64,000 nucleotides of DNA from Monocercomonoides exilis PA203 (GCA_001643675.2 LSRY02000056.1:501390-565389); one strand, 5' to 3'. Positions 16,488 through 62,105 are shown, numbered from the stretch's first letter. Notes: generated by a model from the letters alone, not told the origin. Translations and numbers: made by a program.

Positions 16488-19400
16488 ATGCTTTTATCAT
16501 TGCTTATTCTAGTTGCAGGTTTTCGGAGAATCGTTGGTAAATTGGAAAAGGAGCCATTTACTGAAGATATCATTAATTCTTTCATTGATAAAAGTATTTG
16601 GCAATATGATGATAATGACGCCATTGTAATGACTGATATGATGGCAAGCAAAAAAAGTTGTTTGCATCATTTGAAGCAGAATTTCGATGATTATTTTTTG
16701 TACAAAGACACAAAAAATACTAGAAATTATGAAAATGTATTTTTTGGAAAGAAACTTGACAGGTGTGACGTTTTATTTCTTATTTTCCATGATCTATTAA
16801 ACATTTTTGGTGCATATGCTATTCGAGTTTGCAATTTTCGCAGAAAAAAATTGAGTCACAGTTCATGAGCAGAATTGATTCACAAGTTGTCGCAAAGAAT
16901 TCTTCGCTTTCTGTGGTTCTTGTACAGATTCGCTGCCCACAGAAATCTGCTGCATCTTTGAATTGCATTCCGCATTTGACTGTAATAGGGTCATTGCTGG
17001 AGATGAAGGACTGCCAGGTGATACTTTCGTCGTGCGAGAATAATTCTCCATTTGCGTGCACCGGAGGCTCTTTGGGACTGTGCAATTTAACGCTGGGGAT
17101 TGATGATCCAAAGCATTTTGTTGAATCTCTGGTCTGCCCAATTCCCTCTTCTTTATTACCCGGTGGGTCGATTTCCATTGGTTTCAGCTCTTTTGAATCG
17201 TTTTTCGTGGGATCATCAGCTCCTTTTGTTGGCGGTGCATATTTTTCGGAAATCATAATTGAAGACTGCTTCTTCTGTAACATGTCTTCTGTCGCAATTC
17301 GAAAGAAGCCCCGCCTTTTTGAACTTGAACCAAATTCTAATTTTCTTGAAGGTTGTGAATTTACAGATTGCGAGCAGCCATTTTATGGAGTAATTGTTGG
17401 AGGATTGCCTGAAAAATCGTTTTTATTTCGAAATTCATCTTTTATCAAATCACGTGAAATTTTTACGAACCAAAATTATTCGGTTAGTGGAAAATCATTT
17501 TCCAATGACAATATCACATTTGTTGATTGCAATTTTACAAAATGTTGTTCCGTTCATGGAGGCGCAATAACTGTGAGCGGAAACTCAAAGTTAAACGTGG
17601 CAAGCTGCAACTTTGCTGAATGTTATGATACATTCAACCAAAACTATGGATATGGAGGGGCAATTTACTGCAGCGGAAGTGACTGTGAACTCAGAAGTTC
17701 AACTTTCAACAAATGTTCCGGAAAGGGTCAATCGTCAATTGGAGGAGCTTTGACACACGTTACATCAGGGTTTAGTACAATTATTAAATGTTCGTTTAAC
17801 AGTTGTTCTGCTGCTTATGGAGGAGCAGTTGCTTGGTACATGGGAGGAAGTGGATCTGTTTATGATTCAGATTTCGAAGGAAGCAAAGCCACTTTGAAAT
17901 ATGCAGGAACCTTAATGATGATAAATGTGAAAACGACGATGAAGATATCCAATTGTTCTATTGCTGGGGGAACATCTCAATTAGGTGCAGGTGGAATTGA
18001 CGCTGGAATGAATGGATACTATGCATCATTCAGTTTTGCATATTGCCTGTTTCAGAGAAACTCGGTTAACTATGTATACCATGCTGCGGATGTTTTTTTT
18101 GGGAAATATTTCTCAGCAGCATCAGCACAAAATTCCCTTCAATTCTGCTTTTCATTATCAACTTTTAAGAATAGAGTTGTATTATGTAATGAATATGCAG
18201 AGGATTGTGGCTATGGTGCCCCATACAATCAATGGTTGCCTCATGCTTTGGAAAACATTTTTGTGAAAAATGCTGGAAGTGACAAAGTTGCTTGCGGAGG
18301 GATAGGAAATGAATGCAAGACTGTGAAATATGGAATAACAAGTTGGAACTATTATATGAATAATTCAGTGATTGTTGCGGGAGAGTTATTTGAGGAAGAA
18401 GCGCTTGACATAGAATGGAAGAAGATCAGAGTCAGCGGCTCTGAAGATGGTTCAACGATACTGAAATGTCTATATTCGTCGACAAAAGAAGGATGGATCA
18501 ATATTGGAAATGGCACGCTTGAACTGAGCAAAGCATCAGTGGTGTGTGTGAGCAATCGTTCGGCAGCAATTGTTGGAAAGGATGGTTCACTTGTGCTGGA
18601 GCAGTGTTCAATTGCAAAGGATTCTGAATGCCAAAATCCATCGATGCGATCACTTCTGAAAATCGAAGGGGGGTTTTTGGGAATCAAATCTACGAACATC
18701 ACAGGATTTACATTTTCAGAAGGATGCGCAGTGGAAGTTATTGATGGAAAAGTCGTGAGATTTGAGGGAACAAATTTTTCATCAGTTACAAGTGAAGCGA
18801 ACGGTGGATGTGTGAGTGTTGTGTGGGAGAAGGAAATGAACGGTCAATGTGAAGTGTATTTTGTTGATTGTAATTTTACTGAATGCAGCACAAATGGCAC
18901 TGACACTTGTGGTGGGGCGCTGTATGTGCGTTTGCAAGAAAGAGGTGGGCTGATTATGAACCAAACAGCGTTTTGTGGGTGCATGGCAGGAGTTGAAGAA
19001 GAGAAGAAAGGGAAAGGAGGAGGAATATTTGTTGATTGCAGAAAAACAGATTCATTTGTATTTTCCGATTTGAAATTTGAGAGCTGTGACGCATTTGCAG
19101 GGAAAAACATGTTTATGTTTTCGAATGATTTGAATCAGTCTGTTTGTGCAGATCGTTTTGTATTTGACGTTCGAGAAACAGAAAAGGAGAAGAATTTATT
19201 TGTTGGGAATGACACAACCAAAACAGACTTCGATTTGAGACGATTTTTGATTTTTTATGACAATGAAACGATTTATGTGAGCAGCAGTGGATGGGATGTT
19301 CTTCGGTGTGGCAGCGAAGAAGAGCCGTGCATGAACTTGTATTATGGCAAAATGCATTTCCCATCCAAACAGGAGGTTCCAGATGGTGAGACGAGAACAT

Positions 19401-22400
19401 TTCAGATTATTGGCGAGGTGATGATAAACTGCGAGGCAGACGTTTCAGATATTGCAATTGTGGGATCGTTGGGTGAGGAGCGAAGCGCGTTGATGAGGTT
19501 TTGCGCAGTGGTTGAAGCCAAAGCGGGGAAGACAGAGAAAGGGGAATCTGTTTTTGTGAACGAGAAGGTGAGCGTATTTGGAGGCATGGAAATATGCTGT
19601 GAGTTTGGTTCTGAATGGAGTCAGACCAAGCTTATATGCACACGTGGAGAACGCTTTGAGATTAACGATTGCTCTTTTGTTAGGAGTTCGAGTGATGAGC
19701 TTGTTTATTCGATTGTTGAGTGTCTGTCGGGGAAATGCGAACTGATAGATTGCTCTATGAAACTTCAAAAATGCAGAGAGTGGGTTGTTTCTTTTGCAGA
19801 AGGGAGCCAAATGGTTCTGAGCAATGTTTCTATGGCAGATATTGAGTTGCTTGGAAAGAGTGCATTTGCAGTTGTGGCACAGACAAGAGAGGTGGGCAAC
19901 AATGAAGAAGAGACAGGAAGTTTAATGATGGAAAAATGCATTTTTAATAAAGTTCATCAGAATGGCGGAACAGAATCGTCTGTTTTGATGAGTGTGGGAA
20001 GTGCTGTGGCAATTGTATCAGTGTTAAACACGAGTATGAAAGGCTGCGGAAATACAGACAGTGAAAGAGGAGGAGCGATGCTGATTAGGATGAATGAAAG
20101 GGTGGAATTTTCATGTTGTTTTTCGAAGATAACAGAATGCTTCTGCTCAGAAAGTGGGAGAGGAGGAGGGGTGTATCTGGACTGTGAATCAGCAGCTGAT
20201 GCCTTGCTTCCATTTTTGTTTGAGAACGTCACACTTCAAGGAAACAGGGGATATCGAGGGAGGGATGTGTATGTTAAGTGCCAGGATCTGGATCAACAAA
20301 TTGGGGAGAAGCAGTTCAAACTCGACTTCCGAGCACCATTTGAAAAGGATCTGGCGATATGGGGTTGCACAAAGGAAAACGATGAAGACGAGGAAGATTT
20401 ATTGCTTCGGGTGATGACTTGGCAGAGCGAAACGATTTTTGTGGCAGCAGAGGCAGCAAACAGCTCAGACTCTCAGCAATGTGGCACGACAGATGAGCCC
20501 TGCATTTCGCTGAATATTGGGTTGGCACATATTGTGCCATCTGTGTTCAGCAATCTTCTTGTTGACAAAGAGTGCAAAATAACGGGAGAAGGATCGGCAA
20601 CAGATGTGACGATAAAATCGATGGAACCAGATGGGGAAAGGAGTGTTGTTTTGGTGAACCAAAGTGTTGAAAGAGCAGAAAGCTGTTTGCTGATCTGTTC
20701 TTCAAGGGTGAAGATCGAATATTTGGCATTTGTGATCGGAAGGATGTTTTCGTCAGAGCACCAGAGTTTGATCTGCCTGAAAGATGGAGTGTTGAGTGTT
20801 GTTGATATTTCGTTTGCTGGAGAAGAGAAGTTCGAAGGAGAGGAGGCAATTTCGATGAAGTGTTCGATGGTGAAAGTGAACAAGGGAAAGTTGGTAATGA
20901 GTGATTGCAGCATATCGTCTCTTGTGATTTGTTCGTCTGTCTTTGTTTCAGACCAGGGCAGTGGGATCAATTTGCGGAATGTGAGTTGTTCGAGCATCGA
21001 GTCCATGCAGCTGATGCGATTGAATGATGTTGAAAAGGTGGCATTGCAGGATATGAACGTGTCAAATTGTATTTTTGATGAATGTTTGGCGGAAATGTGT
21101 TGTTGTGCTTCGTGTGAAGCTGAGAGGATTTCTGTTGCAAAAGTGGAATGCAAGAAAGGGATGATTTCTCTCAAAGCGTCTGAAGCTGGAAGTAAATCGC
21201 AAATATCAATACGCTTCTGGACGGTGACTGACGTTGAGGTTGACGAAGGATCGTTGATTTCTGTGGACGAGGAGTGGTCTGGAGTTGAAATCGGAGATAT
21301 GCATGCAACAAATGTGATTTTGTCAAATGGGTGTGGAATCGATATTGTTGCAACGGATGTTGAGCTTATGGTGAAGCAAACTTCATTTATGAACGTGAGC
21401 AGAACATCAGCTGGCCCGTGCTTCCTTTCATCTGGAAGGCCTGCTAAGTCAGCAGTGATTGAACTTTGCTCATTCGTTGGCTGTGAATCACCATCTGTTC
21501 AAGGAAGTATTATCGATGTTTATGAAGCAAAAGAACTCAGGATTGTTTCGTCTGTGTTTGGTGCGAGTGAAATAAAGAAAAATGATTGTGAATCTGGAAA
21601 CAAAGGAGAAGAAGTGTGCCAATGGAACGGATCAGTGCTGCAATTCTCCAACTGCTCGTCAGAGATGAAAGACACAACAGTTGCAAACTCCTCGAAAGGA
21701 GGTGTGACGATCTCTGGAGGATCGATGAAAATGGAAGAAGGGAAGTTTGTTGGAAACAATCCGTTGATCGATAAATACCCATCTGCAAGAAGAAACATGA
21801 TATGTGAGGGCTTTGCGGAGCTGAACATTGTGAGTCTGAAGGGAGGGGATGGTTTGGAAAGGAATTCATCGATGTGGATATTGGATAAAGACTGCAAAAC
21901 GACAGGAATAGCAGATGAGAGAGACTCACTGCTATTCATTCCAAAGCTTGAAGCGATAGAAACAAAGAAAAATGGAGAGAAGATGCAACTAACGTTCAAA
22001 GGATTGCTATTTCTTCCCTGCAATCTTTCGTTCAGTGTTTGTTCATCTGTTGGTGATGTTGAGATTAAGGATTCGTTTCAGTTTGAGGATGACGATTTCA
22101 TTTCGGAGAATGAAGTGCAAGGAGTGATATCAGAAACGATCATCAATGATGCAGCAGACGATGCTGAGGTTTCTGTTTCAATTCTTTTTGGAAATTCAAG
22201 AAATCCAGCGTCAACCGATTTGTTTATTTTGAAGAACAAGAGCAAAGTTCAGACAGATGGAAATGATAATCTTGCCAAAAGTGGAAAGGATGGAAAATCA
22301 TCATGGGCATTGATTGGCTGTATTGTGATAGTTGTCATTCTATTTATATTATTGATAGTATTTGTTGTTCGGTGGAGAAAACAAAAGAGAAGAACAAAAG

Positions 22401-23626
22401 AATTGGAAGTTATTGTGAATGATACTGTTAGAAAAGATCCAAAGTTGATTGAGATGGCGACAATGGAGATGTCTCCTGAAGAGCAGTGGAGGAGAGCTGA
22501 AAGAGAAGCGGAGAAGAAGAACGAAGAGAAGATAAAGAAAAGGGTGTATGAGAAAAGCTTGGGGCACTCGGAGTCGTCAGAGCATTTGTTGAGTGAAAGT
22601 GACTCGACTGAATACATTCTGGGAAGAGATTCAGACAAGATCCCAGAATGGATGTTAGAAAAGGTTGAGAAAGAAGAAGAAGAAGAAGTGAGAAAGGGAT
22701 CACCATCTCCGTCAATTTCATCCACTTCAACAACTGATTCAGATTCCACATTTGTTCGAGGAGAGGATCTGTGCCCAACCACCTCATCAATGTCGAATCT
22801 GGTGGATGCAATGGCATGTTCATCGCCTCACGAAAAGCTCATTGTGGATCTGAGGGATTCGATGTTCATGCTGCTTCACGGGAGGAACAAGACAAAGGAG
22901 ATGGCAATTGGAACTCTGCAGGAAAGAGAGCAAACAGCTGCTCAGATCCTGTTCTGGGTGGCAAATCTCGCTCTTCACTCCTTCGACGAAATGAACAACC
23001 CGCTCCAATCGTTGGCTAATCTGAGTCCGCACATTGTGCTGTTCTCGGAGCACATGGTCATCTGCATTGCGCTCCACTCCGACTGCTCCTCAGATGATTC
23101 TGACTCTTCGTCCATCTCTTCATCTTCCACTATTGTGACATCCTCCTCTGATTGCTCGTGTACGAATAAGAACTGCAGAGACTCACCTCCACCCTCATCG
23201 GCGTTTGAAGACGATGACGACAACAGGAAGGAGTGCATGAGATGGAAGGCGCCAGAACTGATGATGAATAAGAATATGGGAGCAACAAAGGAATCTGTTG
23301 CCTTCTCCATTGGGATAATGCTTTGGGAGTGCTTGACGTTGCAGATTCCGTTTGGTGAGTACGAGGCAGAAGTGGCAGGAAAGAAGATTGTTAATGGTGA
23401 GAGGCCAGAGATGGGGATGGCTGAGGAGTCAACACTGGGAGGGGTTTTGAAGAATTGCATGCTCCAAACGCCTTCAGAGCGTCCATCGTTGGTGATACTG
23501 AAGCGAGAGTTCATTCAGCGGTTTCCAGCAGGTGCGGTTGTGATGACTGTTTCTGATGCAGTGGACATTGATGATGAGACAGGGGACTGTGAAGAGAGCA
23601 ATTTCAGCAGCTTGATTGAGCAGTGA
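16488..23626 (+). CDS. giant type-I membrane protein: signal peptide, Cys-rich Pmp/pectin-lyase-like beta-helix ectodomain, TM helix, truncated TKL-like pseudokinase
   Basis: 2265-aa ORF with GGA(I/L/V) repeats, three CG..(P/E)C modules, TM WALIGCIVIVVILFILLIVFVV, then RWKAPEL and AFSIGIMLWECLTLQIPF. The signal-peptide ORF at 16488 joins in frame through a putative phase-0 GT-AG intron at 16770-16843. Confidence 0.85.
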
Positions 23627-26600
23627 GGATCGAGTGGGTGTTGACGGAATTGGAATGGAAACGATTGAATTGCTGCTCAGTCAAGAGAACAGCAACAGAA
23701 TTGAGTGTGGCAGAGATGAGAATTTGCTGAATACTTTTTTAATGGCTTTGGAGATGAACAATGATCAAAGTTGATGTTCCAAGCAAGATGAATAGATGAA
23801 GATGGAACGAGTGTGCATGTGTGAGTGTCTGTCTCAAATATGGATGGATACGTGGATTTATAAAACCTTTTTCTACGATTTTCAGTCAACTTGTTTGTGT
23901 TAAATTCATAATATTAAAATTCCTTCAAGAATTTATTGTTTTTATTTGATAGTTGAAAAAGAGCTGCACTTCGTTTGATTGCCGAGGAGTTTTTTATTTT
24001 TGTTTCTCAAATGAGAGAAAGTTGACTTTTTTCGTTCACAACAACATTTTCAATTTTATAGATGTTTTCGTTGTCTGTATTCATGTAATTCACATTATTG
24101 TGTTTCACTTATTTCGTTCAAACATTTTTATTCATCATTTCAACCAACACCTTCGATTTTGTTAATTGTTCCAAATTAATAATGTGCAAGATATTGCATT
24201 CACAAATATCAATTATTTGATGAAGTTGAATTTATAAGAAAATGAAAAAATTTTTTTCAAGCTTGGCAGGAAAAACAACAAACTTGAATAAATTGTTCAG
24301 TTTCTTCAATCATGTGCGAAACCATATTTTCATTGAACTCATAATGAGTATGAAATTTTTGTTGTTTTGATCCATAATTTCTCTTGCTTTATTTTCGAAA
24401 ACAATTGGAGAATCTTATCAAAAGATAAAAAATTATTCATAAAAATGAGCACAAAAAGAACAACTGCCTTTTTTAATACAAATTCACAAAATAAGAAATC
24501 GAATTGCTAAGAAATATTCTAAGTCATCAAATTTTTCTTTTTCATAAACCACAACAAATCATCATCAGATATCATCTACAAAATCGAAGCCCAAGAGTCT
24601 CCATATTTTTTTCTTTCGTTTTTTTAATAAAAATAAATAGTGCATTATATCAATGTTATGCAATTGTTGTGAATGAAATAAGGGTTTGATTTTTTTTGAA
24701 ATGAAAAATTGTTTTTTTTTTTCTTATTCTTTCTTTTTTTTTTGAGGGGATATTTACCTTTTCTTTTTCATCAACATGATCATTATCAGAAGATACTTCA
24801 GATGATATATCTTCTGTTTCAGTTTCACTCCAATCATCAAATCCTTCGGATTTTTCGGATTCATCTTTGCAGAATTTGATTGGAGTACATATTTTCAGTT
24901 TTTAACATCTTTATGAAAAATTAAGCACTTTTGTCTTTCGATAATTCAATTGATTATCGTTTTGAAAAAGAATATTTTTCAAAAAAATATTTGATAGACG
25001 TGAAGAAATAACTGATTTTCATGCTTTTTTTGGACAAATCAAAAAATTTATTGTTTCACTCATTTATTTCAGAAATTTCCTCAGTTATCATAATTAATTG
25101 GTTTTTCATATCTGTTAACATGCTTCATTTCGTAGCAGCATTATTTTGTGCAACATAATTTGAATATGAAAAAATGAACACGTTATGTTCAAAAAAACTG
25201 TTTTCAAAAGATACATCCAAAGTACATAATTATTCAATGAAAAAGCTTTGTATTTCTATATTTCCCATTATTACATATGTATATTTACGTTGAATGTATA
25301 TATTTGTGATTTCAATTACAATATATTATAAATTGGTGACGAATTATAGCTATTATTTTTTTTTTGAACCACCTTTTATTCCAAAGTTTTTTTCCAAGCC
25401 CATCACAATAAGTCTTGTATACTAATGTGAAAGAATGCTAAAAAATATATAAAATAGCCAGAAAGAATCAAAGTTGCAACATGAAACAAAATTCATAAAT
25501 CAAAAAAAATTCTTCCATATTTTCAAATAAAAAATTTCACATTTCTGCTCAAAATTGTGTTTTTGTTTTGTTTTATTAATAACCAGGGAAATTGCATACT
25601 ATTTTGAATATAAAAAATGTTGTATTTAGGGCATTATTAATAAATGCAAAAAAAATAATTCAATGAAATTTATGAAAAACTGTTTAAATTTTTAATTGTT
25701 TATTTATTTATTTTTATTAGACCTATTTTCGTTCGTTTAAATCATTTGGTTTCAGCTTAAGCGAAGCCACAAAGTTGAACAAAATTTTAACAAGTGCTTA
25801 TCCCTTTAAAAAATATTGAGTCATTGGGAATTGATTTTCTTCTGGGTTTATGATCATTGTTTTTGACAGTTTTTTCTTTTCAAATTTTTTATAAATTTTG
25901 CAAAATTTTTTTCATTCCAAGAATATTTGAATCATTGTTATTTCGATTTAGCTGAAAAATGCGAAATATACATGAATAAATTTTCGAAAAATTCAAAACC
26001 AATCATTAATAATTGTTCAAACAATTAAAACGTTAAATAGTTGGCTGAATCTCATTCTTTTGATTTTTCTTAACTGAATTGAAGTTTCACAATGGAATGA
26101 TTACAACAGATAAAATAAATAAAAATCAAGATAATAAAGCCAAAAAAATTCATTTGAATAATATAAATGCGCTGTATCATTCAAAATTTTGCTTTTTCCA
26201 TAAGTATTTTGTTTTTATTGAACAGAAATAACAAACAAAAACTGCTTGTCATAGAAAAAACAAATCAAAAACCAAAAAAGAATTGTTTGAACATTTTTCA
26301 TAAGTTAATGAAAATAATGAAGGAATATGAGTGGACCAAACATTGCTAGTTGTAAAATACAGCACAATATTCGCTGGGCATTGTTAAAAGCGATTAAAAC
26401 ATAAAAACCAATTCCAAAAAATCTGGACCTATTTTCATTGATAGATTAAAAACAGATAGAGAATGTATTGAAAATGAAAGAATAAACAGTATACTTAAAA
26501 ATAGATAAAAACATACAATTTGTTCACTAGAGACAGAGCAAACTCAGAAGTTTCATGATCATAGTTGGTATATAACCTTTTTTAAATTGAACAAAAAAAT

Positions 26601-27620
26601 GATTGACTTAATTACAAAATGATTGAGTCATTTGCAATAAGTTGAATAAAATTCAAAATGATCACTTCATTTCGAAATGACAAAATAATTCTCAAATAGG
26701 TCTATTTTTAGAAATCATTGTGAAGTCAGATTTTTTATTGTTGCTATATACATCTGTCTCGAAAAGAAAATATTAACTTGTTGAAATCGAAATCAATTTC
26801 GAATGAGTTTATATAAGATTGTTTGGGAGACAATATTTGAAATATTGGTTTTTTTTTTTTTGTGAAAAAATGATTTTCCTTCTTCAATTGATGATCACAT
26901 TTTGTTAGGTATTTTTTTATTCAACGAATAGAAATTATTTGTATTTTAAAAATTTTGAGTTGATGAAGATTGATCAACATTTTCATCATTTGAAAGCAAA
27001 TTGGCATCGATGTGCATGGGAGATTATTTTTGTATTATAACTTTTTTCGAAGTGTTTTCTTCAAAGGTTGTTTATCAATAAGAAGAAATATCACATTTCC
27101 TTGTTAAAAGTGTAAAAACTGCCTTATAAACAAATGTTTCAGCTGAAATATAGACGAAGACATCAAAAATAAGCTTTTTCATTTTTCAGTGTTCTTTTGT
27201 TGGATTCAATGAATATTTTTCATTCCTAAATTTTGAATGAAATAAAACAATATTAATGATAATCACTAACATTAACAAATGCCAATGAGAAAACACCAAA
27301 CAAAAAATAAAAATAAAATAATGTAAAATAAAGTAAAATAAAATAAAATTCAAAAAAAAAAAAAAAATGGAGTTATTCTTTTCAGATTTATTAAATTTCA
27401 AAATAACAACTAATGCAAAAGAAACAAGAATTTCTTTCATGCTTAAAAATCGATTTTTTCTGAAAAGAATGATAGAGGATTTCTGTCTTAAAATTTGCAA
27501 TTATTTTTAACACACGCAAGAAAAAAAAAGAAGTGAATAAAACGAAAAACCATAGTTTGTATTTCCAAAAATTTTTTCCATTTATCTATATCATATGAAT
27601 ATGTTCTCAAAATTCAAGTT

Positions 27621-28963: not shown

Positions 28964-29057
28964 TTTTAAGATAATAAAAAGATCCAAAAATCTGTAATTT
29001 GTTTTAAAATATTTCTTAAAAAAATCAAATAAAATTACAAATTAATTATAAAATGCA

Positions 29058-43182: not shown

Positions 43183-43245
<63 letters not shown>

Positions 43246-47172: not shown

Positions 47173-47259
<87 letters not shown>

Positions 47260-48261: not shown

Positions 48262-48292
<31 letters not shown>

Positions 48293-49028: not shown

Positions 49029-51353
49029 CTATTTATTGTAATTCTGTGCATCAGCTTCTTTGCTCATCCTTCTCAAAATACGAGTGCGCCTTCCTGGGTT
49101 CTTCATCCTCTTCTTTTTCTCCTTTTTGCTCTGGTCAACGCTTCCTCTAACGAAAGCTGGAACAAACGGCCAGTAATGTTTGTCTTCTGTTATACACATT
49201 TGAAATGTTTCTATTAAAATCTCCAGTTTCTTTTCGCAAAATGAGCAATATGTTGTCTCCTTGTGATTATTCGAAAGGCAATAACTCGTTTGCGACGAAG
49301 TGAAAGACGAAAGAGGTTGCAATGACGGTTGCAATGATGAAAAGAAAGGAATACAATTGCCCATCTCTTCATTCTTCTGCACCATTTCATTAAAAGAACT
49401 AAAAGAAGAAGACGAATAAGCTCCTCTAAAAAGTGTCTTCAAATAGAATGGTGTCACAATAACTTCTTCATTTTCGTATTTCTGCTCTTCTTTGTTCGAG
49501 GCATCATGCAAATCACATCGAGAGAGAGATAATTCTCGTCCATCTGGTGCAGAGTTAGGTGAATGTGGAGGAGCATCGCATTTATTGATGCTATTAAAGG
49601 GATGCGATAGCAAAAAAGATGCAGGCGTTTGTGAAGATGAAGCAGTATGAGTTTTTGAAGAAGGAAAATAACGTGAACAATCTGATTGCACAAAGCGCTC
49701 TTTGGTGAAATGCCTGTCATTGTGAAACTGATGTCTGACTTGTGGTTGTTCAAACGGGTAAGCATTTGATTCCTCATTCTCAAATGATGTTTGAGCAGCC
49801 ACTTTATAACCATGCGACGCTGTTCTATAAAAAGGCAATGCGTGCGATGAATCTCGATTAGAAGTGAGCGTTGAAGAAAGCCGAGAGGAAATTTCAGGCT
49901 TTTCAGAAGCAGCCGAATCAGAAAGAGAACATATAGAGTCGTATGAGTCTGAAGACCTAATGCGTTTCGAGTCATATCCACCGGGAAAAGAATCAAAAGA
50001 ATGTATTTGAGTACAAACAGAAGAGTATTGATTGGAAAAGCCTGTATAGTGTTCAAGAAGGTTATCAAGTTGCGGCTCCTCTTTGCTTTCTTTCTTTTGT
50101 TCTTTGTTTGAAATTTCAGTTTCTCCTTTCTGTTTCCTTTCTGACAAATCTTCGCTATCCAAATTGTCATCCACAACTTTCTCATCTTCTTTAATTCCAA
50201 ACACATTCGAGCGAACAACCATTTCCTTCACAGTTTCAGATTCCTCTTCTCTCTTTCGCTCTTTCTTTTCTTTCTTTTCAATCATTTGCAGCAGCTCTCC
50301 TCTTTCGTCCTCTTCCATTTCGCTTCCTTCAAACAGCAGTCTATTTCGCAGCTCTTCGAGCGTGACTATGCTTCTTTCTTGCTCTTCATACACCAATTTT
50401 TCTTTTGACTCTTCGTCTTTCTCTCTTGAAAGCATTTCTGCTTTGTCCCACAGCTGCTTCTCCTCTGCGCAGATGCCCCAGTCTTTGGACAGCCAAATTC
50501 CGTATCTCTTAAAATGCTTCTTTGCATCTTCTATTTGATGCTCAACAAGCCTTCGCTTTTTCTCGTCAAAGCAAAGCAGCTCATCTTCTTCATTGGTATC
50601 TTCGTCTTCAAAAGACTTGACATCTTTCACGTTCAAATCAAGGAATTTGGAACACGAACTTTTATATTTTTCATCTGGATTTTCCGTTCTTTTATATTTA
50701 TCAGATGCACTTTTTATGTATGAAAGATCCTTTACAGCTTTAAATTTGTGCTTCATGTCTTCATTTCTCCATTTTGTGAGTAATTCTCTGCTATCATATA
50801 ACTGATTAACTTTAACTTGAATTGTTTCTGATGTATATTTGATGTGACTCGGTAAAATTTGCGTTACGGATAGATTTCTCCATGTTAAATTTGGAATATC
50901 AGAAAATCTTGAGTCCAACAATTGCAAAGGTTCATGATCATTTTTTTTCGGATGTAAATTCAAATTAATAGAATTTGTTTCATGTTGCTGATTAAAAGTA
51001 CCAAGCGTCTTGTTCAAACCCTCTGAAGAAGATGATGTTCTTGAATAAAATTGTGTTTCTTCAATTGACGCACGTTGCAGCTTCATTCCAATATTTTGAC
51101 TTTTGTTTTGCACAAAAGCAAAATGTTTTATTGCATTTTCGTTGTGTACATATGCTGCATTCGAGAATTTTGAATTATCACTAAAGCTCCATTGATTTTT
51201 ACACAAAGACGAAGCAAACGGGGATGAAGAAGCAAAAGAAGAATGATATGCTTCGGGGCTTTGGTGCCTTTTTGATGAATATGAAATCGAAAATCCTTCA
51301 TTTTCTTCACCAAAAATTACACAACAATGCCAAGCAAAAATTAATATAGACAA
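49029..51353 (-). CDS. hypothetical protein (charged coiled coil and Ser-rich regions), true start uncertain
   Basis: 774-codon open frame. The 5' end looks intronic, so an upstream exon near 51450-51540 is probable. Confidence 0.65.
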   Translation of the reverse strand: MSILIFAWHCCVIFGEENEGFSISYSSKRHQSPEAYHSSFASSSPFASSLCKNQWSFSDNSKFSNAAYVHNENAIKHFAFVQNKSQNIGMKLQRASIEETQFYSRTSSSSEGLNKTLGTFNQQHETNSINLNLHPKKNDHEPLQLLDSRFSDIPNLTWRNLSVTQILPSHIKYTSETIQVKVNQLYDSRELLTKWRNEDMKHKFKAVKDLSYIKSASDKYKRTENPDEKYKSSCSKFLDLNVKDVKSFEDEDTNEEDELLCFDEKKRRLVEHQIEDAKKHFKRYGIWLSKDWGICAEEKQLWDKAEMLSREKDEESKEKLVYEEQERSIVTLEELRNRLLFEGSEMEEDERGELLQMIEKKEKKERKREEESETVKEMVVRSNVFGIKEDEKVVDDNLDSEDLSERKQKGETEISNKEQKKESKEEPQLDNLLEHYTGFSNQYSSVCTQIHSFDSFPGGYDSKRIRSSDSYDSICSLSDSAASEKPEISSRLSSTLTSNRDSSHALPFYRTASHGYKVAAQTSFENEESNAYPFEQPQVRHQFHNDRHFTKERFVQSDCSRYFPSSKTHTASSSQTPASFLLSHPFNSINKCDAPPHSPNSAPDGRELSLSRCDLHDASNKEEQKYENEEVIVTPFYLKTLFRGAYSSSSFSSFNEMVQKNEEMGNCIPFFSSLQPSLQPLSSFTSSQTSYCLSNNHKETTYCSFCEKKLEILIETFQMCITEDKHYWPFVPAFVRGSVDQSKKEKKKRMKNPGRRTRILRRMSKEADAQNYNK

Positions 51354-52840
51354 ACAAAAAACTTTCTCACACCATATGGTAATTTCGTTTGAAAATATAA
51401 TAAATTCATAGTATGTTAATTATTCTTTCGAAAGTTAAAAAAATCCAACCATTTATTGAAAATTTTTATTATGCATTGGGTTGTCTCATTTGTTTTAAAA
51501 GCAAATATCGATTCACCATTAACTTGTTTTTTTCATGTTTTTGCGTTTCTGGAAAATATTAACCTTTATTTTCTATTTTTCGCTATCAATTTTTTTTTCT
51601 TCCAAATAATTCGAGGAAAAAGCAAAAATTAACAAAAAATTCTTATTCACCATCTACAAAAAAAGAATTACTTGAAAAACACAAGCTTCATGGGAATGGA
51701 ATGTTCGAAATTAGATGGAATACAATAATAGCTCAGAGTTTTGAAAACTGAATGAAAAATATTCTGAATTCCGAGAAATAATCGAAAAGTTCGATGTTCA
51801 TTATGCGAGCTTGTGGGAATCGGGAAAATCTTCAAAATGAGACACTTTTTTACGAAAAATGCTTGAACTTCAAAACAAAGGGCAAAAAAATACAAGAAAA
51901 GGGCAGCCGCTGAAATTTATTCTCCTCCATTTACATTTATTCATATGCTTTTTTGTGTGGGATATCGTTTCAACTCAGGCGGGAGAATGCAACCGTTACA
52001 ACTTTCAAATGTTTTATAAAATTTATTACAATGGAATGTCTTCAAGGAATTATCGAAGAAAGTGGCTAAAATTGATGAAGCAAAGCTGCCTAGAAAAATA
52101 GTGGTTTTGGAAAAGTGCGTTGTGAAAGCATAAAATTCACGTTTATCGGAAAAGAAGATAAGCACGCGAGCCAATTTAGAGTTGAATGAAATCTTGAAGA
52201 AAGGAATCGATTTGAGAGTTTTCTGATGATCGAAATAGGAAAAGAAAGGCGAACGGAACAAGAAGAAAAATAGAAAGAAGAATGAAAAGCACTTATCTTC
52301 ACGAACAATACTGAAGCATCAATAAGATTTGTATCATTTCAGATCACCAAAAACTGTCCAGACTTTCAAAAAAGACAATTTCACATAACTGATGCTTTAT
52401 TTAAAAAAAACCGAAAAAAATATCAGAGAATAAAAATATACACGAAATCTGAAGCCGATGCATTGAAACATAAAAAAAAATCAATGAACATTCATTATTT
52501 CGAAGCACGACAATTATTTGGAAAAGGACTATCAATGTCAACTTATCATTCAGTATTTTTATCTAAAGTTCATCACGAAATATTATTTTATTTATTTTTA
52601 TTCGGCTTTGGCTTTGAACGGAACTTGTGAATGAATTTTTGGATTGATTCAACTGAGATTAATGAATAACACTCAAAATGGTCATTGTCCTCATTTTCCC
52701 GCATCTGAAGGAAAATTGAAGATCAATTGAATTATTTGTTTTTGAACGCAATTCAGTTATCAATAATGGGCGGAACGAAAGATCGAAGAAGCAAACACTT
52801 TCTCGTTTTTAAAATTGAGTTTTTGCTGGGAGAAAATCAA

Positions 52841-55800
52841 ATGACACATGGAGCAAGTTTTTTGACTTTGTGCATATGTGTGCTTTGCATCATCGCAGGT
52901 GCTGCAAACAAAGAGAATTATGAGACGAAGATTACGAAGAAAGAAGAAAAGGGAATTATTTTGGAAGGCATCAGGAAGAACAATGATTTTTGCTTCACAA
53001 ATAGAAGAAACAATAAATGTTCAAAAAATTATGAGAATTCAGGCAGAAGAAATGAAGAAACAGAAGCAAGCGAACAAGATTTTGTAAAAATGAAAAGGAA
53101 AAACAAGGGAAATATTGTCAAAGAATGGCAAGTTATTTTTTTCGAACCAAAATGTTATACTAACGAATTGAAAGATGAAATAAGTGGAAACAAACTCTAC
53201 GAAAGTGAGATTCTTGGATACTTGCTGTTTTCAAATTCAACAGTTATTCTTCAAAGTTTGGCATTTGCAGAGTGTTCAAACGGACGAGTTTTCTGTGCTG
53301 AATGTGAAAGCACAATGGTGCTCAGCGCATGCAGAATATGCACAAAAATCACTGCATCTCCAATTGAGTTAAGTTGCAGCGATGCAATGTTAACAAATGT
53401 TACGCTGCATTCCATGAATCCATCTTCGTTTCAACAAGCCCCACTAATTTTGGGGAAATCGTGCATTTCAATTTCTCCAAAATTGGGAAACGTGCTCGTG
53501 AGTTCTTCTTTCTTTTCTTCGTTCACTGTTTCTTCTGCACCATTTTTGTCTTCAAAATTCATTGAAAAAGCCACACTTTCCAATTTGGAGTTCTTCAATA
53601 TTTCCTCAACATTCAAATCAAAACAGAGCATTTCTAAGGATGTGAAAGAATGCAGCACGATCATAAGCTGCTGTTTGTTTTCGTCTGTTTGTGATGCACT
53701 TGATGGAGGAATTGTTCGATCGATCAATGCTCCATCGTCATCTCTTTTGGCAACAAACACATCATTTGTTGGATGCTATCGTACAACAAATGCTGAATTC
53801 ATTGGAAACGAAAGCAACCCTTCAAAACCAGGGAGGCAAAATTCGACAAGTGAAGTAATAAACACATTTATCTGGTGCGAATGGAATGGATCAAAGGCAA
53901 ATGGAACTGGAGAGTTCAAAGAAGACGGAACATCCAGCGGAGGTGCAATTTGGATGAGTAATTTGCCATCAGGTTCTCTTTCCGCTTTTCATTGTTCTTT
54001 CAATGACTGTTCTGCCCATGGATGTGGAGGTGGAATTGTGTGCTTTGATATTAATTCAGTGAAGGTTGCAAATTGTTCGTTCATAGCATGTGTTGCTAAA
54101 GAAAATTATGGAGGAGGGATGTATTTGATAAATATTTATTATTGCATTCTTGTTGCGGATTGTGCATTCAGAGAATGTTCCTCTAACCACCTTGGTGGAG
54201 GTTTAAATCTTGGAGCGTTCAACATGTCAGGCGGAAAATGCATTGAAGATGAAAGTGGAGAAACAGATAGCGCATGGCTGAAAAACTGTTCATTTATTCG
54301 ATGCACAATAGAAAATATAAAGGGAGGTGGATTCTGTTGCTACAGCATCCCAGCAGAGTTTAAAATGAAAGAAATAGTTTTTATTTCCTGTTTTGCAAGG
54401 GCCTTTGGAGGAGGAATGAGGCTGGAACATTATGAGGAAACGCATCCCAATGATGACAAATACTGTTATTTCCTTTTCTTTCATGATTGCGCATGCTCTG
54501 AATCTATTCCTTATGGTCATGATGTTTTTATTATAGATAGATGCAATTTGATGCAATCAACAAATCCATTTTTTGAATGTTATTCAACTAATATGGATGA
54601 TAGAAGAGTGTGCTATGGATATTCATCAGACAATGAGATCTTTGAGCAAACGAAAATGAAGAATTGGCTCAAAGACGGAGTGATTGATCGATTTGTTGGA
54701 ATTGATGGAATGGATTCAGGAGAATGGTGTGGATTAAGTCAATTCACAAGATGCAAAACAATTGGCTTTGCAGTTGAAAATAGCCTGAATCAGTTGAAAT
54801 CAAGAATAGTTATTCTTGAAGGGAAGCATGCAAGTGAAATACACACAATTGATGTGTGCGAAAAGAGTATTGATATTGTCGGAAAAGGGAAAGATCAAAG
54901 CTCAATTAGTACAGAGTCACTAAACTCTTCTGCTTCATTCCTTTTCAGTGTGTTAAATGGAAACCTTTATGGTGCACATTTTTGCATATTCCTAAGTTTT
55001 TCAAGTCATCTTTCTCAAAGTGTATTTGTCGTTGCATCTGAAAGTGGAGCTCTTTCATTGGAAGAAGTCAAAATCACTTCAGAAACTGAAAAAGAAGTTT
55101 CTTTATCAACATCAATATTTAAATTACCTCTTTCACAATTATCGATGTGTGTTGTTGAGATTGAAATGATATCTGGATCATTACCACTATTTTCAGAGCC
55201 CCATTCCTCAACTATAGAGTCAAAAGAAAGCATTTTGTCAAATGTGACAATCCGAAATGTGAATCGGACAACAGGTGATGGAGTGGTGATGGCAAAAAGC
55301 GTGAAGGGAGGAGAAACATTTGTGGTGCGAAATGTAACGATGGATGGATGTAAGTGCCTGGATGGATGCGGTGGAGGAATCAAAGTTGAATTAGAGGAAT
55401 CATCAAGTAAAGCTTGCATTGGAACAACATCTTCACAAGATGGAGGAACAACAACATTTGATCAATGCAGTTGCGGAGGATATGGAGGAGGGGTGATGCT
55501 ATTTCTGGCAGATAATTCATTTGACTTTGAGATTTCATCGGTGAGTTTTATTGGTTGCAGTGCAACATTGGGAGGGAAAGATGTGTTTGTGAATGGGAGC
55601 AAGCTGGTGAGCGGGACAATAACAATTGCAAAGCTGAATGTTGGACACAATGGATCTGTTTATGATGAGCTGATGGGATATGACAGGAATGAGGGAGGGA
55701 TGGGAATATTCCCATTGAATGTGTTTTTTGATGCATTTTCAGGAGCAGCACATGTGGGGAAGGGGGTAAATGGGTATGGAGGATATGACTCGTGGTTTTG

Positions 55801-58800
55801 TGGGTTTGGGTATTTTCCATGTTCCACAATCGAGTTTGCTTCACAGAACAGATTCAGTTCGTCAAAGAAGAACATTGTGCTGGATTCAGAGTTTGAGCTG
55901 GGAGAAGTTGTGTCGATGGCAGGGTCATATGAATGGGAGGTGTATTGTGGGATTAACAAGACGGATGTGAATGTGAGGGTGCCGAGTGGAATGACATCTT
56001 CGTATTTGATAAATGTTCAGAGTGCAAGCTCAATAAAGAACATTGCGTTCCAAATTCCATTTCTGTTGTCAAGTGCAACATCGCTCATTGGTTTGACCAG
56101 CTCATCACTCACACTCATAGACTGTTCAGTTGCTCATTTGTCAGAGAGCACATCGAGTGTGGCCTTTGGATACAGTTTTGTGAATGCGCAGAGCGGGAGT
56201 CTAAATATGGAACGATTTGTGATTGGTGGAGCACTTGTGTTTGGAGCTCATTCAGCGATTGAATTTTCTGAAGGAATGGCGAGTGTGATTTGTTCAGGAT
56301 GCAATATTAGTGGAGTTGTGAAAAATTGTGGAGATGGAGGATGGATAAAAGGAACAGTTGGAGGAAGTGGAACGTTGACAGTTGATGGATGCAATGTGAA
56401 TGGGTGCAGTTGTGTTGGAGGAAAGGGAGGAGGAATATATGTTGGATTGAAGGAAAACGGGAAAGTAGTTATGAATGGAACATTGATATTTGAGGGATGT
56501 TGTGCAGGAAGTCTTGAGGAAAAGGGGAGAGGAGGAGGGTTGTTCATAAATGTTGATTCGACTGAATCGGATTTCACCATTTATGAATCTGTGATATTTT
56601 CTGAAGAAAACCCAAACAAAGCTTTTCATGGAAGTGATGTGTTTGTTCAGTGTGGAAGCGGGCTTTTGTTGGAAGAGATAGTTAATCAAGCATCCTTTGG
56701 ATTCTTCAAAGATGGAAACTGCATGAATAATGAAGAGAAGTTGTGTGGATGCGAGGATGGGACATCGTTGCCAGTTATTCCACTGTGTGTGTATTTGTGT
56801 GATTTTGAATCTCCCATATCAGTTGACGAAAGGAGTGGTGCAGATCATTCGCATTGTGGATATTCCGTTTTCTGCTGTTCAACAATCGACTTCTGTGTTC
56901 GTGAGCGAGTGAATGAGCTTGTGAATGCGATGGAAGTGATATCATCAGCATCGATCAAGAATCCGTTTGTTGTGCCTTTGTTTCAAACATCTCAAATATC
57001 AATTTCTTCTTCATCTGCATCATCTTCTTCGAGCCAATATCCCTTGGTGAATGTTGGCTTGACTGACAATATCTCCACTGACTGCCACAATGTTATTCAG
57101 TGCTCTGGCAGCTTTTCTCTGTCTTTTCTCTCTTTTGCTCTTCCTCGTGTTCTTCCTTCCTCAATATCTTCGATTATTCAGTCATCAATCTTTCTCTCTT
57201 TGAGCAATATTTCGATTGTATTTTCAGCTGACACTCTTGCGAGCTCTGTGGCATTTTCGTTAATTCATGTGAGTGGAGGTGAATTGGAGCTCACAGGATT
57301 GGTTGTTTCTGAGGATATCACTTTCGCTGCGCTTCCGCCAATCAATGTGAACGGAGAATCACGAGTGGCAGTTGAGGGATGCACATTGACAGAGATGGCA
57401 AACGAGGGAGGAAGTGGAGGATGCGTGAAAGTGGAAACGAGTGGTGGAGGAACCATATCGATCAAGAACACGAACATATCATCAAAGTGCAAAAACGAAG
57501 AAGGACTGAGAGGAGGAGGGATGATGATATTAATTGGAAGTGGAGGGAGTTTGGAAATGAAAAATGTGAATTTGTCTGAATGTGAAGTTCCGTCAGTGGA
57601 TATTGAGGATGGAGGAAAGGGAATGGGAGGAGGAATGTTTGTTGCATTGCCAGAGGAAATAGAGAAATTTGTGATGGAAGGAATGACATTTGAGGGATGC
57701 AATGCCTGGAAAGGGAAGAATCTGTTTGTTTCAGGATGGGATTTGAGGGAAGTTGTGAACAAGGATCATTTGAAATGGGAGATGAGTTCAGAGGAGTTGG
57801 AATCACTGGATGAGTTGTGTGGATGGGAAGGGATGACAACAGGAGAAGAATATGAGATCCCGCTTGTTGTGTATTTGTGGTCAAATTGGAGTGGGAAAGG
57901 GTTTGTTTCGAAAGAGAAAGGAGGAGGCTTCAGTGGATGTGGATATTCAGAAGCGCCATGCTCCTCGATCGACCACATGATCAAAATGCGATTCTCTCCA
58001 GTTGGTTTGGAGAAATCGATCATCAAAGTGGAAGGATCAGCTTCACTCAAACATTCAGTATCCTTGCTGCCTTCCAAACCGTCTGATGAAAACCGGCCTT
58101 TGATTTCAGTTGAAGGAGGTGATGAGGCTGTGCACTTGTTCGTATCTGGTGATGGAGATTCCTCGGATGATGGCTCGCTGATCTCCAACTCGGTGAATGC
58201 TTCCTTTTCAAACCTAATAATCGATCTTCCGAGCAGATGTGAGTTCCACAAATCATTCATCCGCTCTGTGTATTCGGTGTCTTTCTCTCTTTGCAGGTTC
58301 ATTCCATCTGACACCTTGTCTCCTTCTTCTTCTTCCTTGTGTGTGCTTGACATTGCGGAAGGGGATGTCTCCCTGGAGCACTGTGCACTTGCGACTTTGT
58401 CTCTGGCAAATCCTTTTCTGCGACTGTCAGCCAATTTCCATTCAGCGCACATGCACAACACATCGTTCATCAATTCGTCTGTTTCTTCTGACAGTTTCAT
58501 ATCAGTTTTCCCCACTGGACTCCATTCAAATCAGTTGGCTTTAGGAGATTCACCCGATTTGCCAGTGGATTGCCCATCAATGAACATGACATCTGTCACA
58601 GTCGAGAATGTGTCGAGAACTGAGGAAGGATCAGTGTTTTTGGGTGTGGATGAGTTTGCTGGATTGAAGTGTGGAATGGAGAACTGCACGTTCTGGAACT
58701 GCCTCAGCCGGCAAAGCAACAGAGGAGGAGGGCTGATGATGCACATGAAGAATGAGGAGTCGAGCCTGGGAGTGAAAAACTGCACATTTGTGTTGTGTGC

Positions 58801-61800
58801 TTGTTCTGAGAGCACAGGGAGAGGAGGCGGGATGATGCTGGACTTTTGCGATCCAGATGCTCCCTTTCAAACCCCTTCCAAACCGCTCCTTCTTCACATT
58901 GCGGGTGTTCAATTCATGATGAACAGTGCATTCATGGGGAAGGATGTGTTTATCAACTGCCATTCGATCGGTGAGCAGATCAACGAAACACTTTTCGCTC
59001 TTGACTTTTCGCAGCCCTCGCTGCGCATGAACACATCGATCTGTGGGAGCGACTCAGCACATTCAGACATCGATCTCATCCCGCTGATCACATTTCTGTA
59101 CACGCCGCAGGTGTTTGTGTCGATGGAGTCTGAAGACAGCAACCAGTGTGGGAAGCAGGACAATCCTTGTCGAAGCGTGTCACACGGAGTGAGGCATGTG
59201 CAGGCTGGGCTGTTCAATGCGATATGTGTTGACTCATCGAGTGTGGTGGCTGAGCCGACAGTCGTCAGCGATCTCACGCTGAAGTCGATCACCAAACACC
59301 AATCAGCAATTCATTTCAATTCATCGATTGAAGAGGAGTCTGAGGGATCGTGGATCATGTTGTTTGAAAACGAGTGTTTGGTCGAAGACTGCTTGTTTTC
59401 GTTTGACGAGCATTTCTCAGCAGAGCACACAGCGATTATGAAGCAATTGAATGGATCGTTGGCATTTTCAGGCTGCACTCTGCAGTCATCATCTGTTGAG
59501 TCTACTCTCAATTCGAGTGTTATTGTGGTTGAAGGAGGAGTGTTTGAGATGGAGAAGAGCTCGATATGTGTGATGGGCACAGCTCAGCCATTGTTCCTCT
59601 TCAAGGGTGGGTCAGCTGCCACTCTGAACCAGATCGAGATATCCACAATAAAAACAACTGCAACTGCAATGATTGTTGAGTCGAGTGCATCAGTGAACAT
59701 CATGCAGCTGGCTGCATCTGACATTCGGCTGTGTGGGGAAAACTTTATTTCTCTGGCAAAGGGGAAGAATCAGCATGTGAATGAGAAAGATGCTGGAGAA
59801 AGGGTTGTTCTGCAGATGGGCATATCATCGTTCTCAAACATCACCAGCAGCAGCAGCAATTCCCATGTGGTTGAGTCGGCGTGTGAAAAAACAAGAAGCC
59901 AATTGTTGAATTGTTCGTTTGAAAGATGCTTCACACCTTCAGAGAAAGGGAGCTTGGTGGAAATATCATCTGGGGCATCTCTGTCTCTGCAGTCATGCGA
60001 ACTGATTGGATGTGAGGATGAGCATCAGAGCGAAAAGAATGGAGCAGATGAGGATGTGTGCAAATGGACTGGATCGGTTGTTGATGTGTGTGAAGGGTTG
60101 CTGGAGATGAAGGACACATCGATCACAAACTCTTCAAAAGGCGGGCTGTCGATCAGTGGTGGAAGTGCTGTTATCGAAAGCTGCTTGTTTGAGAATAACA
60201 GCAAAAGAATCGAAAGATACAGGTCTGCAAGAAGAAATGTATTCTGCACAGGCAGCGGAACACTCAATGTTGTTGATTTGAAAGGAGGAGATGGATGGGA
60301 AAGAAATACTTCACTTTGGATTTTGAATGAAGGATGCAAGCTGTTGGGGATTGCTGCTGAAAGATCATCCGAGTTCTTCATTCCAACGCTGAAGTCAGTT
60401 GAAACAACTCAAAAAGAAGATACTGTTGAACTGACTTTCAGAGGGACGCTTCTTCTGCCATGCAATCTGGGATTCCAGATTGTGTCAAAAATAAACAATG
60501 TCAGCTCAATCGAGACTCACGCTTTTGCGGAAGATGAGTTTGTTTCTGAGGAAGAAGTCCAGGGCAAGATAGGTTCGTCTTTGGTAAGCCCTGCTCCAAC
60601 AGAAGCAGAAGTGGCTGTGTGCATATTGTTTGGAAATGTTTCTAATCCATCTTCCACAGAATCTTTTGTTCTGAAGAACAAAAGTGAATCTGAACCAAAA
60701 GGAGATGAAAAGATTGTTGAAGGAGGAAAGAAAGAAAAATCTATATGGCCGATTATTGTTATTGTGCTTGTGGTTATATTGTTGATTGTTCTTATCATTG
60801 CAGTTGCATTTATTGTTCGATGGAGAAAGGTCAAGAATGAAGCGAAAGATCTGAGGGAGATTGTGAATGATACAGTGAGAAAAGATCCGAAATTGATTGA
60901 GATGGTGACAATGGAGATGTCGCCTGAAGAGCAGTGGAGGAGAGCTGAGAGAGAGGCAGAGAAGAAGAATGAAGAAAGGATAAAAAGAGGGTGTATGAAA
61001 AAGCTTGGGACACTCGGAGTCATCAGAGCACCTTCTTTCTGAGAGTGGATCAACTGAATATATTTTGGGAAGGGATTCAGACAAGATTCCTCAATGGATG
61101 TTGGAAAAGGTGGATGAGAAAGAAGAGGAGGAGGAAGAGACCAGAAAGCGAACACCATCACCATCCATTTCATCCACTTCAACCACAGACACTTCAGACA
61201 CTGAATCCACTTTTGTTCGGGGAGAGGATCTGTGCCCCACCACCTCGTCGATGTCGAATCTGGTGGATGCAATGGCCTGTTCATCGCCTCACGAAAAGCT
61301 GATTGTGGATCTGAGGGATTCGATGTTCATGCTGCTTCACGGGAGGAACAAGACAAAGGAGATGGCAATTGGAACTCTGCAGGAAAGAGAGCAAACAGCT
61401 GCTCAGATCCTGTTCTGGGTGGCAAATCTTGCGCTCCACTCCTTCGACGAAATGAACAACCCGCTCCAATCGTTGGCCAATCTGAGTCCGCACATTGTGC
61501 TGTTCTCGGAACACATGGTCATCTGCATTGCGCTCCACTCCGACTGCTCCTCAGATGATTCTGACTCTTCGTCCATCTCATCAACCACAACTATTGCCAC
61601 CTCTTCCTCTGATTGCTCGTGTGCGAATGGGAACGGCAGAGGATCGCCTCCGCCCTCATCGGCGTTTGAGGATGAAGATGATTTCAGGAAGGAGTGCATG
61701 CGGTGGAAGGCGCCGGAGCTGCTGAGCGGCGCAAAGGGGCACGCAACAAAGAAGACGGTGGTGTTTTCGATCGGGATGATGGTGTGGGAGTGCCTGACGC

Positions 61801-62105
61801 TGCAGATCCCGTTTGGGGAATACGAAGCAGAAGCTGCCGGGCAGAAGATTGCGAACGGGGAGAGGCCAACACTGTGCAGCTGCGAGGGCATTTCGCTCGG
61901 CCAGACAGCATGCGCCGCAATGTCGCAGCAGCCCCACAGCAGGCCCACGCTCCAGGAGCTCAAGAAAGCGTTCATCGCGCTGTTTCCGCCTGCCTCTGCC
62001 ATGCTCACAGCCTCTGACGCAATCGACCTCGTCGATGCCACAGGCATCCCCCCTCCCTCCGCTTTGCCTGCTTCCGCTGTCTCAGAGACGCTCACCTCGT
62101 TTTGA
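52841..62105 (+). CDS. second giant Pmp-like beta-helix / TM / truncated pseudokinase receptor, apparent frameshift at ~60985-61002
   Basis: Signal peptide MTHGASFLTLCICVLCIIAGAA, five CG..C modules, TM IWPIIVIVLVVILLIVLIIAVAFIV. The tail ORF 61005-62105 is paralogous to 22560-23626. Two single-A deficits in A-runs relative to the paralogue. Confidence 0.85.

Follow-up and report, generated by a model that had tools for sequence, protein, structure and literature searches.

The window analysed here, a stretch of 64,000 nucleotides of contig C54 of Monocercomonoides exilis PA203 (LSRY02000056.1:501390-565389), carries two receptor-like genes, A (MONOS_10033) and B, each encoding a long ectodomain, a transmembrane (TM) segment and a cytoplasmic tail. 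The central block of the two tails is almost the same down to its silent sites, and we consider it very likely that this resemblance was produced in A by ectopic gene conversion from the B lineage, i.e. by a process that is ordinary in a large gene family. A reading of the window made from its sequence only (hereafter the sequence-only reading) had presented the two genes as a pair of paralogues; paralogues they are, but they form no special pair, since they belong to separate subfamilies (A, A2 and A3 for one; B, B3-B7 and B29 for the other) within a family of hundreds. Features of the window lie on its plus strand unless stated otherwise.

The core block occupies positions 22745-23105 in A and 61206-61566 in B (offset +38461), and its B version is identical in copies B3 and B4. 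Within it, 22841-22968 of A equals 61302-61429 of B; a script established that this run is exactly 128 nt long, synonymous sites included, as the sequence-only reading had claimed, and that it is not extendable. The encoded core protein is identical as well, the nonsynonymous divergence (dN) between A and B being 0 over the 121 codons of 22745-23105. At the nucleotide level there are 12 differences over 22745-23105, and identity is 97% over 22750-23105, against 79% in the TM and juxtamembrane part, 76% in the kinase-lobe part, 54% at the C-terminal end and about 55% in the membrane-proximal ectodomain; divergence thus resumes after the RWKAPEL motif, as had been noticed earlier. The synonymous divergence (dS) between the two genes is 0.06-0.19 in the core versus 1.2-1.5 in the flanking coding sequence.

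A recent duplicate of A, A2 (MONOS_9539), lies on the minus strand at C54:352500-362499 and shares 97-99% identity with A throughout an 8-kb unit that includes the flanks, and a third copy, A3 (C63:89000-98999), is ~94% identical; both A2 and A3 fall outside the best 40 matches to the A core. Between A and A2, dS amounts to 0.048 in the ectodomain, 0.30 in the TM and juxtamembrane part, 0.90 in the tract 22745-23029, 0.06 at 23030-23105, 0.11 in the kinase C-lobe and 0.00 at the C-terminal end. For the reciprocal comparison B was represented by B3, an intact copy that is essentially identical to it in the tail region: dS between A and B3 is saturated in the ectodomain (2.9), 1.49 in the TM and juxtamembrane part, 0.19 in the tract, 0.06 at 23030-23105, 1.18 in the C-lobe and again saturated at the C-terminal end (2.7). 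The limits of the B-like tract, 22745-23029, come from a run test of the 3SEQ type with A as child and A2 and B as parents, in which the maximum descent, 44 net B-like informative sites, was not exceeded in 20,000 permutations (p < 5e-5). Over 23030-23105 the three copies A, A2 and B resemble one another, so that the conversion tract may extend on to 23105. The maximum-likelihood tree of the core places A with B, B3 and B4 (support 80/91) inside the B-group clade (98/98) and A2 elsewhere, whereas the tree of the flanks joins A and A2 (100/99), and on these flanks the approximately unbiased (AU) test rejects a grouping of A with B, B3 and B4 (p = 5e-11). The sequence-only reading had argued that purifying selection alone is insufficient for the silent identity and had proposed a conversion tract; given that dS is not uniform along the gene, that the run test is significant and that core and flank trees are incongruent, we come to the same view.

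The likelier recipient would be A, because the closest relative of the A2 core elsewhere is only 88% identical, while the B-group cores are mutually coherent. We envisage that, after the duplication that separated A from A2, a copy of the B lineage 38 kb away on the same chromosome served as template and that conversion replaced some 285-360 nt of A. Two Ser-rich, indel-prone linkers where homology falls bound this tract, and it is there that a homology-dependent tract is expected to end; a passive process, with heteroduplex repair limited by homology, would suffice, and nothing programmed needs to be invoked.

Comparable mosaics occur in other copies, and chimeras, which the sequence-only reading had predicted, are found in the assembly. 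B29, located on contig C16, has an ectodomain of B type (98%), then switches repeatedly between B-like and A2-like sequence through the tail, and ends with a C-lobe, a C-terminus and about 340 nt of 3' flank of A type. B itself is chimeric: its homology with the B group starts abruptly at 56460, inside a cluster of GGxI motifs, where an ectodomain part foreign to that group is joined to a B-group body. Further mosaic copies are B5, B6 and B7. Of the 294 positions at which A and A2 differ, most are gathered in 17 patches of 14-291 nt, spread along the whole gene, ectodomain included. In these patches the proportion of synonymous differences (pS) is 0.09-0.65 (0.25-0.53 in the larger ones) versus a background of 0.016, and its nonsynonymous counterpart (pN) gives pN/pS ratios of about 0.06-0.8. 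The patches are imported sequence; diversifying selection was considered and rejected, the synonymous divergence in them being up to ~40-fold over background. Clustered differences of A2 from A, with high synonymous divergence, were also noticed in the ectodomain and at the TM segment, at positions 8340-8600 and 3740-3900 of the C54:352500-362499 stretch, and the assembly holds no donor for them above 71-80% identity.

Several points weigh against gene conversion as we describe it. When the 361-column core is taken alone, the AU test does not reject a grouping of A with A2 (p = 0.26). Of the 12 differences between A and B, 7 fall at 22745-22840, in the left part of the tract, and the conversion may have been a composite event or have taken place earlier than it appears. 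For the patches of the A2 ectodomain, a donor search of the assembly found none above 71-80% identity, so that not every patch is accounted for by an extant donor; the alternatives are that the donors were lost or escaped assembly, or that these patches are islands from an older A2 that was almost wholly overwritten by A. Lastly, the mosaic rests on one assembly, made from Oxford Nanopore Technologies (ONT) reads and polished with Pilon, and the Logan contigs are too fragmented to span the tract: in them the depth of core words is 10-100 times that of the flanks, and no contig bridges the tract. Among RNA contigs, those matching the 3' end of A (23330-24000) do so without differences and none falls on 22000-22400; the 3' stretch in question is largely common to A2 and B29 (100% over 23423-23611, 92-100% beyond).

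This brings up the possibility that a B-like core was put into A by the consensus step or by Pilon through multi-mapping reads. The PA203 assembly (82.3 Mb in 101 contigs) was obtained with Canu on ONT reads and polished with Nanopolish and with Pilon, the latter in ten rounds (PMC8767320), the family is highly repetitive, and B, at the nearby contig end, clearly holds uncorrected homopolymer errors. Such an artefact is nevertheless very improbable. The core of A differs from that of B at the 12 sites already mentioned and is therefore no straight copy; about 44-60 sites would need to have been changed in the middle of a gene, where 9-kb reads span; the unpolished state of B suggests that ambiguous reads were left out of polishing rather than misused; and like mosaics exist in many copies, on many contigs.

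The sequence-only reading had gone one step further, and taken the core for a constant, homogenised segment that acts as a recombination anchor. Diversity was measured in 16 copies picked by their similarity to the membrane-proximal ectodomain of A, a sample hence unbiased for the tail. Along the tail it is 0.27-0.54 at third codon positions versus 0.05-0.26 at positions 1 and 2, and the core is not below the juxtamembrane region at third positions, save for a dip to 0.27-0.28 at 22751-22870; elsewhere the core reaches 0.40-0.54. Median nucleotide identity over the 1128 pairs formed by 48 copies is 0.81 in the juxtamembrane region, 0.82 in the core and 0.75 in the C-lobe, and the only pairs with a core at >= 95% and both flanks < 88% are those of A with B, B3 or B4. 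In the B group it is the juxtamembrane region that is more discordant than the core (76-80% versus 93-99% in the flanks, for B-B5 and B-B7). The core is thus no special anchor, being no more homogenised across the family than the juxtamembrane region, and it is precisely there that A and A2 differ by a dS of 0.90. Its invariance as protein is due to family-wide purifying selection, and the silent identity of A and B to one specific event.

The same figures bear on a constraint on the nucleotide sequence itself (codon bias, RNA structure, or an element that is antisense or embedded) that would keep silent sites identical. The third-position dip would fit such a constraint, as would the long open reading frames (ORFs) that run antisense over the tails on the minus strand (22975-23514 for A, 61403-62332 for B), but A2, otherwise 98-99% identical to A, should then not differ from it by a dS of 0.90 in the tract, nor should the core show such third-position diversity and a median identity close to that of the juxtamembrane region. 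We give this explanation next to no credit.

Another possibility is that a recombination anchor in the tail or core was selected for, in order to shuffle ectodomains onto tails, perhaps under exclusive expression like that of antigenic variation. The existence of chimeras with open frames, with breakpoints in the tail (B29) or at the border of a GGxI module (position 56460 of B), could be taken in this sense, and so could the intact long ORFs of 8 of the 10 copies of the A and B subfamilies and the pN/pS of about 0.5 between the ectodomains of A and A2, which is above the tail value. However, apart from the lack of special homogenisation of the core, imported patches are found everywhere along the gene, and the tract ends display no special sequence beyond the low-complexity linkers. 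As for switching, nothing was found that points to a programmed system of the antigenic-variation type: A and B sit amid housekeeping genes (kinesin, calreticulin, PITP), neither a telomere nor an expression-site feature was seen, and the literature describes M. exilis as a commensal (PMC6759080). A selected anchor therefore seems unlikely to us. A broader proposal can be made, namely that the whole family acts, in this commensal protist without mitochondria, as a repertoire of beta-helix surface receptors that is under selection and diversified by recombination. Conserved blocks, among them the tail core and the GGxI clusters, would then provide crossover points at which new combinations of head, body and tail stay in frame, and palindromic pairs such as B and B3 (see below) would promote exchange; taken jointly, these suppositions are rather doubtful.

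Under gene conversion, as under its rivals, much depends on how A and B are built. The sequence-only reading had assigned to both a shared architecture of signal peptide, Cys-rich GGA modules, TM segment and kinase remnant; modules, TM segment and kinase remnant are indeed common to both, but B is not a single ORF as assembled and the signal peptide of A lies in a separate frame. In A, a 5' ORF (16488-16868) with a signal-peptide-like start (MLLSLLILVAGF...) precedes a main ORF of 2265 codons (16829-23626), which covers ectodomain, TM helix and cytoplasmic tail and which MONOS_10033 matches with 0 mismatches. The two ORFs being in different frames, a short 5' GT..AG intron is implied; its candidate borders were enumerated by script, and the two ORFs were taken unjoined in searches and structure predictions. 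This arrangement is also kept in A2 and in A3, whose putative 5' intron holds a 1-nt indel. A3 is furthermore split by a frameshift into 1894 + 350 codons, annotated as MONOS_12513 and MONOS_12514. The annotation of MONOS_10033 splices out 72 codons at 18674-18889 as an intron. This intron is probably spurious, because the ORF runs through it uninterrupted and, from 18746 on, the stretch lies within the family alignment and within a confident beta-helix model.

In B, the first frame extends over 52841-61042, with a candidate start Met preceding a signal-peptide-like segment (MTHGASFLTLCICVLCIIAG), the ORF itself being open from 52727; the remaining tail frame (61005-62105; 366 codons) is intact up to a stop that is typical of the family. 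Two deletions of 1 nt each, at 60981 and 60997 and both within A-runs, interrupt the frame. Compared with B3, B has ten further single-base homopolymer deletions at 63108-63848 (two of the runs being adjacent at 63522) and a single-base insertion at 63707 (an extra T). The frameshift thus probably reflects unpolished ONT homopolymer error at the contig end rather than pseudogenisation. B3-B7 and B29 are all on C16, and all have intact ORFs of 2627-2644 codons; over the ten copies of the two subfamilies the eight intact ORFs measure 2277-2644 codons, B and A3 being the two that are broken as assembled.

The part of B upstream of 56460 is itself related to other members. Positions 52400-53973 are 98% identical to a separate 429-codon ORF located 5' of B29 (C16:1194926-1196499), which looks like a truncated, 'head-only' copy; its 1.57-kb counterpart in B consists of the signal peptide and the first ~400 codons. 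Positions 55241-56545 form a 1.3-kb ectodomain module that recurs in more than 40 copies, 81-88% identical to it (on C42, C2, C41, C31, C58 and other contigs), and that belongs to a subfamily different from that of the rest of B.

The position of B at the end of C54 has its own explanation. An inverted-repeat arm (56460-63933), which begins within the ectodomain coding sequence of B, is common to the 3' end of C16, where copy B3 resides, with 99.4% identity (partner at C16:1405900-1407046). It is followed by the palindrome centre and the first bases of the other arm (63934-64000, assigned to neither strand), with a loop of ~54 nt, and the terminal 78 nt of C54, once reverse-complemented, coincide with the terminal 78 nt of C16. 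It follows that B and B3 form the two convergent arms of a single palindrome of 2 x 7.5 kb (~15 kb), at the centre of which the assembly broke; C54 and C16 abut and can be joined tail to tail, so that A, A2 and all of the B cluster lie on the same chromosome. Double assembly of a single locus, as an alternative for B and the C16 copy, was rejected, as the sequences upstream of 56460 differ and the contig ends overlap in reverse complement. No telomere was seen at the end of C54, this end being the palindrome centre. Other convergent pairs (+ then -) of family members were noticed on C1 (2704/7149, 75999/80426 and 189973/194395), with APE motifs ~4.4 kb apart, matching the spacing expected from B and B3, and on C10 and C36, where the two members of a pair, separated by 3 to 17 kb, are 100% identical in the tail segments of ~1 kb that were compared (juxtamembrane, core and C-lobe). 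Tail-to-tail palindromes seem to be a common arrangement in the family, and repeats together with palindromes broke and degraded the reference assembly.

After its single TM helix (22304-22369; WALIGCIVIVVILFILLIVFVV, assigned from sequence), A has a cytoplasmic tail of 420 amino acids (aa). It starts with a conserved juxtamembrane region (22370-22744), ending in a Ser/Thr-rich linker of variable length, continues with the core, and finishes with a remnant of a kinase C-lobe (23213-23506), which covers positions 160-256 of the 258 of Pfam profile PF07714 (PK_Tyr_Ser-Thr) and in which RWKAPEL represents the APE motif. The tails of A and B match this profile at positions ~160-257 only, with E values of 1e-9 and 7e-8, respectively, both above the gathering score, and the same half-kinase (profile positions ~160-258 only) was found in ten out of ten more distant members; in A, B and these ten, the Pfam and PDB-profile matches begin at profile position ~157-164. 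The C-lobe is present from APE to helix I in A and B, and matches in the PDB (TAK1, ILK, CTR1, MLKL) cover the C-lobe only. No profile match, with Pfam or PDB profiles, was obtained in A, B and the ten other members for an N-lobe with Gly-rich loop and VAIK lysine; the profile positions of the HRD catalytic loop and of DFG remain unaligned, and neither motif appears in the consensus of 40 aligned tails. Three parts are nearly invariant among these 40 tails: the juxtamembrane stretch, the core of ~120 aa and the kinase remnant from APE to helix I. Judging from sequence, the tail would thus be non-catalytic, with a conserved core block of no assigned fold, followed by the last ~100 residues of a kinase domain of tyrosine kinase-like (TKL) type. 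Could the core be a degenerate kinase centre? An AlphaFold2 model of the whole tail, built with 40 paralogues, is too poor to judge this (mean predicted local distance difference test, pLDDT, of 49.6), the PDB profile search did not extend the kinase match into the core, and the ESM Atlas gave no lead for it. An alignment by eye of the core to kinase helix E, catalytic loop and DFG was dropped, as the AlphaFold2 model (pLDDT about 30-50) gives no support to it.

The ectodomain was more amenable to modelling. An AlphaFold2 model of residues 640-1200 of A (window positions 18746-20428), based on 71 family segments, has a pLDDT of 90.6 and a predicted template modelling score (pTM) of 0.85, and displays short beta-strands all through; its top Foldseek matches are pectin methylesterases, PL6 lyases, phage tailspikes and autotransporter passengers. 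According to this model, the module is a right-handed parallel beta-helix. GG[AG][ILVM] motifs number 8, in 3 clusters, in A (by motif count), and form 5 clusters in B (as read from the translation), so that the module numbers given in the sequence-only reading, 3 and 5, are correct. The Pfam family Chlam_PMP (PF02415) has no match at E <= 0.1 in either ectodomain.

How large is the family? A degenerate pattern for RWKAPEL-coding sites found 859 of them genome-wide, against 0 with the reversed control pattern, and a first look with searches of the genome DNA gave 983 candidates for the core and 743 for the C-lobe. The family thus has ~860 copies of type-I membrane proteins, A and B being both members, and, assuming ~9 kb per copy, it would occupy roughly 9% of the genome. 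Proteins similar to the tail (131) and to the ectodomain (180) of A are all M. exilis entries, mostly named 'uncharacterized' with a few 'putative protein tyrosine and serine/threonine kinase'. In the literature, the largest gene family of M. exilis is that of the "protein tyrosine kinases", with 332 genes, 320 of which are TKL (PMC6759080), and these genes coincide in part with unclassified repeats (PMC8767320); no account of their architecture or mosaicism was found in these two papers or in the Preaxostyla comparison. The published kinases correspond to what we describe as a family of roughly 860 copies encoding giant beta-helix receptor-like proteins. As all 12 tails tested lack the catalytic half, the published kinome figure largely counts non-catalytic receptor-like genes, which bears on how the kinome of M. 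exilis, a model amitochondriate, is read. The A-B event itself is textbook gene conversion, and its value lies in being a well-delimited example in a large, poorly described family; the size of the latter raises the question why a gut commensal keeps so large a surface repertoire. Elsewhere in the window, the stretch 8000-12000 has 43-48% G+C, a strong GC skew and many overlapping short ORFs on both strands; that it is a decayed receptor copy was rejected, as no protein-level similarity to the receptor family was found.

Turning to known systems, the kinase remnant resembles the TKL pseudokinases ILK and MLKL, the best PDB matches, with a C-lobe similarity from APE to helix I at E of about 1e-7. 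ILK and MLKL are non-catalytic scaffolds that keep a complete bilobal fold, whereas in A and B neither the profiles nor the low-confidence model reveal any recognisable kinase part N-terminal of APE. At the level of the whole protein, one may think of the transmembrane kinases (TMKs) of Entamoeba histolytica, about 90 genes with CXXC-rich ectodomains related to the Igl lectin (PMC1087818, as cited in PMC7762796). These too form a large protist family of type I, with variable Cys-rich ectodomains and a kinase-type tail, and are discussed as a repertoire for sensing or variation. The M. exilis ectodomain is, however, predicted to be a right-handed beta-helix and not CXXC/furin-like, the copy number is about ten times higher, and only the last ~100 kinase residues are found in A, B and the 10 others tested; no sequence relationship to the Entamoeba TMKs was detected. 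Massive duplication is also known for the transmembrane cyclases of Trichomonas (PMC2914791). For the ectodomain, the closest parallel is with the chlamydial Pmp and the trichomonad Pmp-like proteins, which have GGA(I,L,V)/FxxN beta-helix repeats (PMC10715098, PMC11166332, PMC6701047). Motifs of the GGA[ILV] type on the coils of a predicted parallel beta-helix are common to both, as is the expansion into surface-exposed families; the M. exilis genes differ by the lack of a Chlam_PMP match at the threshold given above, by a TM helix and cytoplasmic tail in place of the autotransporter barrel, and by being eukaryotic.

Mosaic or segmental gene conversion is well known in families of surface proteins such as var of Plasmodium, VSG of Trypanosoma, VSP of Giardia and MSG of Pneumocystis. 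The conversion tract described here is different in that it lies in the cytoplasmic, not in the exposed, part of the protein, and no expression site or telomeric location was seen. Nevertheless, the receptor family of M. exilis shares with these systems the short donor patches, the discordant phylogenies along the gene, the birth-and-death evolution and the pseudogenes.

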